Below, in pieces: positions 39,132-42,100 of a DNA stretch of 64,000 nt. Both the position numbers and the translations under genes were made by a program. The notes under the pieces are model-generated. The model searched no databases and was not told the origin of the DNA. It was given only the letters and a program-made list of their open reading frames with translations. The stretch is from the NCBI RefSeq assembly GCF_032444005.1, contig NC_091290.1, positions 146,630,001 through 146,694,000 of the forward strand, read 5' to 3'. Every line of letters starts with the position of its first letter. Position 1 is the stretch's first letter. The DNA is from Ranitomeya imitator (taxonomy: Eukaryota).

Positions 39132-42100
39132 ATGGCGGGAGTGGGCGGAGAGGCGGGCCTGGACTGTGGCGGGAGGATTCATTCTGAGGTGATTATTACA
39201 GCTGTTAGGACAGTTTGTGACTGAGCGCGAAAGCTGGCGGGGAGCAAGTGCAGAGCGGTAATGAGGCGGCTGGTGACGTCATGTGTGTGAGGACTGAGGC
39301 GGCTGGCGGTGACGTCATGTGTGTGAGGACTGAGGCGGCTGGTGGTGACGTCATGTGTGTGAGGACTGAGGTGGCCGGTGGGGTCGTACGTGTAGTGCCT
39401 GAGGCGGCCGGTGGTGACGTCACGTGTAGTGCCTGAGGCGGCTGGTGTCGTACGTGTAGTGCCTGAGGCGGCCGGCGGTGACGTCCTGTGTGTAGTGTCT
39501 GAGGCGGCCGGCGGTGACGTCATGTGTAGTGCCTGAGGCGGCCGGTGGTGACGTCATGTGTAGTGCCTGAGGCGGCCGGCGGTGACGTCATGTGTAGTGC
39601 CTGAGGCGGCCGGCGGTGACGTCATGTGTAGTGCCTGAGGCGGCCGGTGGTGTCGTACGTGTAGTGCCTGAGGCGGCCGGTGGTGACGTCATGTGTAGTG
39701 CCTGAGGCGGCCGGTGGTGACGTACGTGTAGTGCCTGAGGCGGCTGGTGGTGACGTCATGTGTGTGAGGACTGAGGCGGCCGGTGGTGTCGTACGTGTAG
39801 TGCCTGAGGCGGCCGGTGGTGACGTCACGTGTAGTGCCTGAGGCGGCTGGTGTCGTACGTGTAGTGTCTGAGGCGGCCGGCGGTGACGTCCTGTGTGTAG
39901 TGTCTGAGGCGGCCGGCGGTGACGTCATGTGTAGTGCCTGAGGCGGCCGGTGGTGACGTCATGTGTAGTGCCTGAGGCGGCCGGCGGTGACGTCATGTGT
40001 AGTGCCTGAGGCGGCCGGCGGTGACGTCATGTGTAGTGCCTGAGGCGGCCGGTGGTGACGTCATGTGTAGTGCCTGAGGCGGCCGGTGGTGTCGTACGTG
40101 TAGTGCCTGAGGCGGCCGGTGGTGACGTCACGTGTAGTGCCTGAGGCGGCTGGTGTCGTACGTGTAGTGCCTGAGGCGGCCGGCGGTGACGTCGTGTGTA
40201 GTGTCTGAGGCGGCCGGCGGTGACGTCATGTGTAGTGTCTGAGGCGGCCGGTGGGGTCGTACGTGTAGTGCCTGAGGCGGCCGGTGGGGTCGTACGTGTA
40301 GTGCCTGAGGCGGCCGGTGGTGTCGTACGTGTAGTGCCTGAGGCGGCCGGTGGTGTAGTGCCTGAGGCGGCCGGTGGTGTCGTACGTGTAGTGCCTGAGG
40401 CGGCCGGCGGTGACGTCGTGTGTAGTGTCTGAGGCGGCCGGCGGTGACGTCATGTGTAGTGCCTGAGGCGGCTGGTGTCGTACGTGTAGTGCCTGAGGCG
40501 GCCGGCGGTGACGTCGTGTGTAGTGTCTGAGGCGGCCGGCGGTGACGTCACGTGTAGTGCCTGAGGCGGCCGGTGGGGTCGTACGTGTAGTGCCTGAGGC
40601 GGCCGGTGGTGTCGTACGTGTAGTGCCTGAGGCGGCCGGTGGTGTAGTGCCTGAGGCGGCCGGTGGTGTCGTACGTGTAGTGCCTGAGGCGGCCGGCGGT
40701 GACGTCGTGTGTAGTGTCTGAGGCGGCCGGCGGTGACGTCATGTGTAGTGTCTGAGGCGGCCGGTGGGGTCGTACGTGTAGTGCCTGAGGCGGCTGGTGT
40801 CGTATGTGTAGTGCCTGAGGCGGCCGGCGGTGACGTCCTGTGTGTAGTGTCTGAGGCGGCCGGCGGTGACGTCATGTGTAGTGCCTGAGGCGGCCGGTGG
40901 TGACGTCATGTGTAGTGCCTGAGGCGGCTGATGGTGACTTTGTGTGAGGACTGAGGCGGCTGGTGGTGACGGTGTGTGAGGACTGAGGCGGCTGGTGGTG
41001 ACGGTGTGTGAGGACTGAGGCGGCTGGTGCTGACGGTGTGTGTGGACGCTGGTGGTGACGGTGTGTGAGGACTGAGGCGGCTGGTGGTGACAGTGTGTGA
41101 GGACTGAGGCGGCTGGTGGTGACGGTGTGTGAGGACTGAGGCGGCTGGTGGTGACGGTGTGTGAGGACTGAGGCGGCTGGTGGTGACGGTGTGTGAGGGC
41201 TGGTGGTGACGGTGTGTGAGGACTGAGGCGGCTGGTGGTGACGGTGTGTGAGGACTGAGGCGGCTGGTGGTGACGGTGTGTGAGGACTGAGGCGGCTGGT
41301 GCTGACGGTGTGTGTGGACGCTGGTGGTGACGTAATTCTAGTGTTTTCATGTGTGAGGGCTGTACATATGTCCTATCCCCTGGCCCCGGTGTATGAGGGC
41401 CCTTAAGTGACACAGGCCCTCAAAGAATGAATTTGTTTCTGACAGGCTGTCTCGGCGCTGAGCCCCTCGGACCTTCTCCACCTGAATGTTGGCGGTTGGG
41501 CCTTCTCCCTTCCCGCCGTGGCTCTTGCTCGCTCTGGCGACTCCATTCTGTGGCAAGATGTCTCCTGTTTCCCTCAGGCTGACGGCAGACGGGTTTTCCT
41601 GGACCGGGATGGGTCTGTGTTCAGACTGGTCCATCATTTCCTGCTCACCTCTCAGCTCTCCGTGTCCTGCTTGGCCGAGCTGGATGTCCTATGTGAACAG
41701 ACCCGAGCGCTCCACCTGCAGCCGATGATGGAGGTTTGTTCACTGTCTTAAAGGGAGCATGCAACATCACAAAATCCACGACGGCAAGGGGCACGCCATT
41801 CTACGTTCCCATGACATGATTGTGGCGTACCGACTGGTTGCTATGACGGCTGTGGGTCTGCTGAACACCCGTGTGCTTGTCATGATGGTACTCCTTTACT
41901 CTATCCCGTACTGGCACTTATAGGAGACTGATTTCTTCTGCATACAAGTATTTAGTACATGTGATTGGACAATCGCAGCTTCAGGTCCCCTAAGGGGACT
42001 ATTAAATCCAGTAAAAAGTGATTCAAAAAAGTTAAAATTTCTCCATTAAAAATAATTGAGAAAAAAACACACATTTGGTATCGCTGCGTTCATAAGCGGA

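Follow-up and report, generated by a model that had tools for sequence, protein, structure and literature searches.

A young minisatellite rich in CRE palindromes in KCTD19 intron 1 of a poison frog, probably amplified in place from a promoter-proximal segment

Multimerised cyclic AMP response elements (CREs) are found in synthetic CRE reporters and in the long terminal repeat (LTR) of human T-lymphotropic virus 1 (HTLV-1), which has three CRE-containing 21-bp repeats. Among natural loci, variable number tandem repeats (VNTRs) regulated by CTCF occur in the promoter and in intron 2 of SLC6A4 (PMC2848977), and effects of VNTR copy number on methylation and expression have been described genome-wide (bioRxiv 10.1101/2020.12.16.423078). 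In frogs, GC-rich recombining subtelomeres of Xenopus tropicalis and others carry repeats in which local or transposon-derived seeds of tens of base pairs (bp) have become kilobase arrays (PMC10794172). Here we analysed a stretch of 64,000 nucleotides (nt) from the poison frog Ranitomeya imitator (NC_091290.1, positions 146,630,001 to 146,694,000, forward strand; hereafter the window), in which a tandem array with 23 perfect CRE palindromes occupies most of the first intron of KCTD19. The array is probably a young, lineage-specific minisatellite, amplified in place from a promoter-proximal segment with a CRE or CRE-like site, and its number of CREs would be a by-product that was not selected.

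The minisatellite (window 39263-41335, plus strand) consists of about 64 head-to-tail units of 24-36 bp each and measures 2.07 kb. Tandem Repeats Finder (TRF) reported a 34-bp period with 58 copies at 39271-41188, after which 32-bp units run to 41319, as well as higher-order periods of 322 and 405 bp. Splitting the array manually at the conserved left end of the unit gave 64 units of 26 sequence types (39263-41340). Its variant units stand head to tail and fall within the 10-100 bp per unit and the minimum of 0.5 kb by which minisatellites are defined, so it belongs to this class. The perfect CRE palindrome, TGACGTCA, occurs 23 times in the window, every time within the array and never outside it, compared to a mean of 0.61 and a maximum of 3 in dinucleotide-preserving shuffles of the window. 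TGTG follows in 19 of these sites (TGACGTCATGTG) and CGTG in the other four (TGACGTCACGTG), and a TCAYGTG E-box abuts each of them. The half-site TGACG has 66 matches when both strands and both halves of full sites are counted. CREs form runs of up to five consecutive sites at 34-bp spacing, and all 23 lie within 1.63 kb; the array is also a homotypic cluster, in which many sites for the same factor fall within a few hundred bp. An earlier note on this DNA had described about 23 perfect CREs in a 2-kb, CpG-dense array of 34-bp units, with an E-box overlapping the CRE and CRE-less units at the distal end, and our measurements agree in each respect: the count is exact, the E-box is invariably present, the array has 207 CpGs at a ratio of observed to expected CpGs (CpG o/e) of 1.11 and a GC content of 0.66, and the last units carry TGACGG instead of the palindrome. 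On the KCTD19 sense strand, which is the plus strand, the array is G-rich (GC skew +0.41).

The palindrome is present in 23 of the 64 units (36%), and these 23 CREs are copies of a single ancestral site, not 23 independent events. Three kinds of unit can be told apart (Table 1). Edge units are the oldest type: no other was seen in the sister species, and they match a single-copy segment in the related frog Rhinoderma. The central, derived units form higher-order blocks of about 289-405 bp, and the distal units are the CRE-less ones. The window holds 15 copies of the octamer GCTGGTGG, the Chi site of E. coli, which recalls the classic minisatellite core; 13 of them fall in edge and distal units of the array (39338-41327). 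Elsewhere in the window (1599-2004), a 19-bp x 21 array has a G-rich unit resembling the left half of the CRE-array unit. Both units contain GAGGCGG followed by GCTGG, which may reflect chance or a shared G-rich core.

The origin of the unit is best seen in Rhinoderma darwinii, a member of the same superfamily with a promoter 84% identical to that of the window over 269 bp. (Coordinates with the prefixes L001, L002 and L003 refer to the Mantella, Ascaphus and Rhinoderma loci, respectively.) When an edge unit (39332-39369) was searched against both strands of the whole 44-kb Rhinoderma locus, the best local match was L003:10043-10077, with a score of 31 versus 22 for the next-best place; the alignment has 27 identities in 31 aligned bases and a single 4-nt gap. 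In 2000 shuffles of the unit, this score was never attained. The matching segment is single-copy and lies at the orthologous position, just 3' of KCTD19 exon 1. The array aligns to this segment at its left edge and, through the terminal partial unit with the right flank, at its other end as well. Both edges and the unit itself match one orthologous single-copy segment, which argues for amplification in place and against transposition. Rhinoderma reads TGACTTCA at the position of the array's TGACGTCA, followed 33 bp further on by TGACGTCT, and its 44-kb locus contains no perfect CRE. The poison-frog array begins three bases past a GTAATG (39257-39262) that corresponds to the annotated KCTD19 exon 1 donor of Rhinoderma (L003:10031-10039). 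RNA from the window uses the upstream donor 39188/39189, and first donors therefore differ between the two species or between their annotations.

Contigs from a sister species (run X4, about 96% identity in the flanks) cover the promoter, the first two or so units and the right flank from 41306, and a 68-nt unit contig is present at about 4x single-copy depth. At a likeness of at least 85%, no sister-species contig fell on 39500-41299, a region where a DNA run of the same species does have contigs. For this reason the central units, and with them 20 of the 23 CREs, look specific to the R. imitator lineage. Blocks within the array share exact runs of 201 bp at an offset of 289 and of 190 bp at an offset of 405, so the latest duplications must be very recent. 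The same-species run, whose contigs cannot gauge the length of the array, departs from the window at five sites and has an extra GGC in unit 1, inserted at 39271. These differences could be taken, together with the inability of short-read contigs to span the array, as signs that its length or unit order is an artefact of assembly. However, both junctions and internal units recur in independent contigs, the higher-order structure is free of internal conflict, and the differences themselves suggest another haplotype, which leaves an artefact highly improbable. Copy-number variability within the species is plausible, given that the array changes fast between relatives and is CpG-island-like.

A minisatellite of this kind would have started from a seed of about 36 bp, roughly 75 bp into KCTD19 intron 1 in the CpG-rich bidirectional promoter region, that carried a CRE or CRE-like site. 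Unequal exchange or slippage would have amplified single units first and blocks of 9-12 units later, and the 23 perfect CREs would have been inherited as copies of one site. If the array is unmethylated, its proximal CREs would be expected to bind proteins of the CREB/ATF family and could shift the output of the promoter.

The exon similarity of the BTB/T1 domain and the conserved neighbours identify the gene with the array as the KCTD19 orthologue. In an exhaustive search, exon 2 found its best matches in proteins of 850-960 amino acids named KCTD19 in Anomaloglossus, Ascaphus, Mantella, a lizard and the coelacanth, and it is 82% identical to KCTD19 of Dendrobates tinctorius. Searches of a protein atlas resolved matches no further than the family. 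The KCTD19 RNA contig begins at 39148, 3' of the predicted ATG at 39132; two dendrobatid annotations likewise start with MAG. The array makes up 92% of intron 1. Its distances from the exon 1 donor and from the LRRC36 ATG, given in the earlier note as about 75 and 330 bp, are 74 bp (from 39188/39189) and 328 bp (from 38934). The name LRRC36 for the divergent neighbour is a putative one, based on a Pfam match to leucine-rich repeats (LRRs), on conserved synteny and on exon similarity to the frog neighbours of KCTD19. In an exon-by-exon comparison of gene models, two LRR exons on the minus strand (35961-36089 and 35700-35894) were 69-85% identical to exons of an LRR gene that, in Ascaphus and Rhinoderma, is the head-to-head neighbour of KCTD19. 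Among seven other frogs, the loci whose gene tables include an LRR gene, KCTD19 and a PLEKHG4-type RhoGEF keep them in this order; in Ascaphus, the locus shows the first two, head to head, and not the third. Mouse Kctd19 is flanked by Lrrc36 and Plekhg4 (PMC8104389), the same order as in frogs.

Transcription of the pair is divergent: RNA contigs, the ends of which are not transcription starts as such, end at 38959 (minus) and 39148 (plus), which places the starts at most about 190 bp apart. The two ATGs (38934 and 39132) are 198 bp apart, and exons of both genes are also present in a second run (X8). The LRRC36/KCTD19 bidirectional context proposed in the earlier note is therefore upheld by homology, which names KCTD19, and by spliced contigs, which give intron 1 and the divergent transcription. 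ATGGCGG stands at each start codon, and the promoter motifs further comprise CCAAT boxes at 39057 (plus) and 39111 (minus) and two GC boxes, at 39084 and 39143. CpG o/e is 1.02-1.19 in the bins covering 38501-41000, and GC content is 0.61-0.67 from 39001 and 0.46 in the 38501 bin. By its closely spaced starts and its sequence composition this is a CpG-island bidirectional promoter, under limits of 1 kb for the distance between starts and of 0.55 for GC and 0.65 for CpG o/e across a length exceeding 500 bp. In cold-blooded vertebrates, islands predicted in this way are an unreliable guide to those that are non-methylated (PMC3583005). The first intron of LRRC36 is mostly filled by an array of its own (70 bp x 28, 91% matches, 36194-38178), such that each gene of the divergent pair has a 2-kb array in its first intron; X8, a possible RNA run, contains short contigs of the LRRC36 array. 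Directly 3' of KCTD19 exon 2, at 41836-41895, contig depth rises to 125-153 with many loose ends in the DNA runs of both species, which points to a high-copy dispersed repeat common to both.

Table 1. Arrays, unit classes and gene features at the KCTD19 locus. Coordinates without a prefix are window positions.
Feature	Coordinates	Strand	Description
KCTD19 intron 1 array, poison frog	39263-41335	+	~34 bp x 64; starts 74 bp after exon 1 donor
KCTD19 intron 1 array, Rhinoderma	L003:10126-11504		23 bp x 52; starts 92 bp after exon 1 donor
KCTD19 intron 1 array, Mantella	L001:10041-10172, 10335-11376		34-bp array, then 17 bp x 62; ~15 bp and ~310 bp after donor
KCTD19 intron 1 array, Ascaphus	L002:9701-9890		22 bp x 8; starts 55 bp after exon 1 donor
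Edge units	39263..39367	+	three units, 33-36 bp, ending ...GTGTGAGGACT; CRE in all three
Central derived units	39368..40920	+	47 units, ending ...GTAGTGCCT/GTCT; CRE in 20
Distal units	40921..41316	+	last ~14 units, about 32 bp, CRE-less; TGACGG replaces TGACGTCAT
Terminal partial unit and right flank	41317..41380	+	contains TGACGTAA; aligns to Rhinoderma segment
KCTD19 exon 1, coding part	39132..39188	+	MAGVGG..., donor GAG/GTGATT, RNA-supported
KCTD19 intron 1	39189..41445	+	2257 nt, GT..AG; spliced contig of run X3 joins 39188 to 41446
KCTD19 exon 2	41446..41733	+	first BTB/T1 domain (BTB_2)
LRRC36 (putative) exon 1	38862..38959	-	ATG at 38934; RNA contig reaches at least 38959
LRRC36 (putative) intron 1	36090..38861	-	spliced contig joins 38862 to 36089; holds unrelated array
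LRRC36 (putative) exon 2	35961..36089	-	LRR; 79-81% identical to Ascaphus and Rhinoderma counterparts
Shared bidirectional promoter	38935..39131	.	TATA-less, no CRE

By its motif content, the array could be read as a working homotypic CRE enhancer, or as a methylation-switchable module, through which CREB/CREM/ATF proteins would drive KCTD19 and LRRC36 in testis with an output that depends on copy number. The excess of palindromes over the shuffled expectation, the E-box abutting each of them and their position in CpG-island-like sequence are consistent with such a device; counted from the 5' end of the KCTD19 RNA contig, the CREs begin at 126 bp and the first few lie at 126-200 bp, and both genes are transcribed in two runs. 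Multimerised CREs are strong enhancers in synthetic reporters. However, most CREs of the array stand 0.3-1.75 kb downstream of the start, which is beyond the usual range of CRE function. Alignment of the units also speaks against this explanation. Their left part is nearly invariant, whereas the CRE is the most variable part: entropy peaks in its 3' half (columns 20-22, 1.07-1.60 bits), and mean column entropy is 0.85 bits for the eight CRE columns versus about 0.5 for the rest of the unit. Point changes, deletions of 1-4 nt or a 10-nt deletion have removed the palindrome from 41 of the 64 units. This variability weighs against selection for CREs, and the absence of most of the array from the sister species weighs against the enhancer.

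Comparison among frogs bears on the same question. The LRRC36 start, TAGCAACGGCGG, GAAAGGTTCC and a GC box are found in the poison frog, Rhinoderma and Mantella alike, with TAGCAACGGCGG (a MYB-type CAACGG, at about 38970) invariant in the three species; CCAAT boxes are common to the poison frog and Rhinoderma. The promoter core conserved among these three frogs contains no CRE. In Rhinoderma, the orthologous single copy of the unit is not a CRE, and in Mantella we found no CRE within 6 kb around the promoter, even when one mismatch was allowed, and no perfect CRE in 64 kb. An RFX X-box-like word, GTTGCCATGGAG, is present in the shared promoter of Rhinoderma (L003:9905-9925) and Mantella (L001:9893-9912). 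The Rhinoderma copy aligns with the KCTD19 start codon of the poison frog (39125-39140), where the sequence reads AGTTATGGCGGG and the word is not kept.

Nor do the known regulators in mouse point to CREs. Expression of Kctd19 starts in spermatocytes, at postnatal day 10-12 (PMC8104389). A-MYB, TCFL5 and STRA8 bind the Kctd19 promoter, and A-Myb mutants have 10-fold less Kctd19 mRNA (PMC9812935). CREM-tau acts at the spermatid stage (PMC3091680), later than this onset, so the link to CREM-tau drawn in the earlier note is weak. Supplementary files of the CREM/CREB chromatin immunoprecipitation sequencing (ChIP-seq) study mention neither KCTD19 nor LRRC36, which is weak evidence since these files may be incomplete. 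The array contains neither the TCFL5 consensus WANSWCGW nor the MYB consensus YAACNG; MYB-type sites were found in the promoter only. Taken together, a selected enhancer seems unlikely to us. The interpretation given in the earlier note stands as regards gene context; its enhancer claim was drawn from motif content, and several of the results above weigh against a selected CRE device. The same note had also raised the idea of a transcription factor sink, in which the array would titrate CREB/CREM/ATF proteins away from other targets. The number of sites is what recommends this idea, but 23 sites are few compared to the thousands of CRE or half-CRE promoter sites occupied in germ cells (PMC3091680), and we regard a sink as implausible.

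Several points nevertheless weigh against a by-product of recent amplification. Of the 59 units in which the corresponding columns are present, 57 retain the CpG at the centre of the CRE, which also counts in favour of an enhancer; combined with the CpG o/e of 1.11, this could mean protection from methylation and constraint, or merely youth. In Ascaphus, two perfect CREs flank the same promoter at distances of up to about 700 bp, one per first intron, so the promoter may have received CRE input for a long time. The absence of the central units from the sister species rests on short-read contigs, which drop repeats.

Conservation of CREs in orthologous promoters is not seen, the two Ascaphus sites being unalignable to the array seed. 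One of them (L002:10324, in KCTD19 intron 1) was considered as a relative of the seed, sharing 13 nt with unit 1 (E 0.013). We treat this match as unproven because the CRE lies inside an inverted-repeat element and unit 1 is atypical and shortened. Bounded by 20-nt inverted repeats (at about 10103-10122 and about 10361-10380) and inserted among 46-bp repeats, the element spans about 280 bp (L002:10100-10380) and resembles a small CRE-carrying transposon. An argument from CpG decay was likewise set aside. The three commonest substitutions between units are C/T changes at CpGs outside the CRE centre, but these changes cannot be polarised, since T forms occur in the old edge units and in Rhinoderma, and no conclusion on germline methylation follows.

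All four frogs examined, which represent four families, have an array at the start of KCTD19 intron 1, built from unrelated units (Table 1). The comparison of the orthologous intron among anurans that the earlier note had called for thus yields arrays, but unrelated ones, with TGACTTCA in Rhinoderma, no CRE in Mantella and unalignable CREs in Ascaphus. The four arrays range from 0.33 to 0.83 in GC, from -0.79 to +0.57 in GC skew, from 0.19 to 1.18 in CpG o/e and from 0.13 to 2.1 kb in length. From each locus's own array density, we roughly estimate the chance that arrays in the three other species would start in that 125-bp stretch at about 2 x 10^-5. The seed of the Rhinoderma array lies about 30 bp beyond that of the poison-frog array, which indicates a separate amplification event; two hyloid lineages amplified neighbouring pieces of one ancestral sequence. 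The window as a whole (GC 0.48) holds eight arrays scoring at least 400, which together span 11.8 kb or 18% of its length. Mantella has a further array directly 3' of KCTD19 exon 2 (L001:12732-13806, 25 bp x 44, GC 0.70, CpG o/e 1.28). Its unit holds a GC box (GGGGCGG), making it a second factor-motif array at the KCTD19 locus, in another frog family.

The cause of array birth at this spot is probably mutational. Amphibians have no prdm9, and the tandem repeats of frogs grow in regions and chromosome ends that are GC-rich and recombine at high rates, probably by unequal crossing-over (PMC10794172). We tentatively suggest, as a possibility short of an expectation, that in frogs minisatellites are born repeatedly at the start of KCTD19 intron 1, the promoter active in meiotic prophase serving as a hotspot of double-strand breaks without PRDM9 and the repair of these breaks spawning arrays. 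Repeated break repair would generate arrays from whatever adjoins the promoter, binding sites included. If this is true, germline promoter activity would predictably yield arrays of transcription factor motifs as a by-product, and with them a steady supply of new regulatory variation; should the recurrence hold beyond these four families, germline promoter activity would be tied to PRDM9-independent recombination and to the birth of minisatellites.

Alternatively, selection might keep some array at this place for a role independent of its sequence, such as spacing, nucleosome exclusion, extension of the CpG island or formation of R-loops. The arrays of all four families do start about 15-92 bp from the exon 1 donor, and those of the poison frog and Ascaphus are G-rich on the sense strand (skew +0.41 and +0.57), but the four arrays share no property of GC, skew, CpG o/e or length, and a recurrent mutational hotspot accounts for their position without any function. 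We consider a selected role of this kind decidedly improbable. R-loop formation or G skew as a general property of the arrays was rejected: compared to the +0.41 of the poison frog, skew is opposite in Rhinoderma (-0.40) and Mantella (-0.24 to -0.79).

Read as a minisatellite amplified in place, the array shows how quickly, in evolutionary terms, one promoter-proximal binding site can turn into 23, while the single-copy ancestor can still be read in a related frog. Rhinoderma with one CRE-like site, the sister species with a few units and R. imitator with 64 form a natural series, which could serve to test the effects of extra CREs on promoter output or methylation at a meiosis gene.

With multimerised CRE enhancers, the array has in common several closely spaced CREs beside a promoter, and theirs is the mechanism that it would resemble if active. 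Unlike those enhancers, in which 3-6 sites lie upstream of a TATA promoter and activity is proven, it has 23 sites that are intronic, downstream of a TATA-less CpG-island start and read from sequence. The VNTRs at SLC6A4 and elsewhere resemble it in their units of tens of bp, their distance of less than 2 kb from the start, a factor motif in each unit, labile copy number and CpG richness. They differ in that here the motif is a perfect CRE palindrome and the array, known from its sequence, fills nearly the whole first intron at a bidirectional promoter. The repeats of frog subtelomeres are alike in growing from seeds of tens of bp into kilobase arrays, in expansions that differ between lineages and in a GC-rich, repeat-dense context, but in KCTD19 intron 1 the seed was a promoter-proximal, regulatory-looking segment and not the tail of a short interspersed element (SINE).

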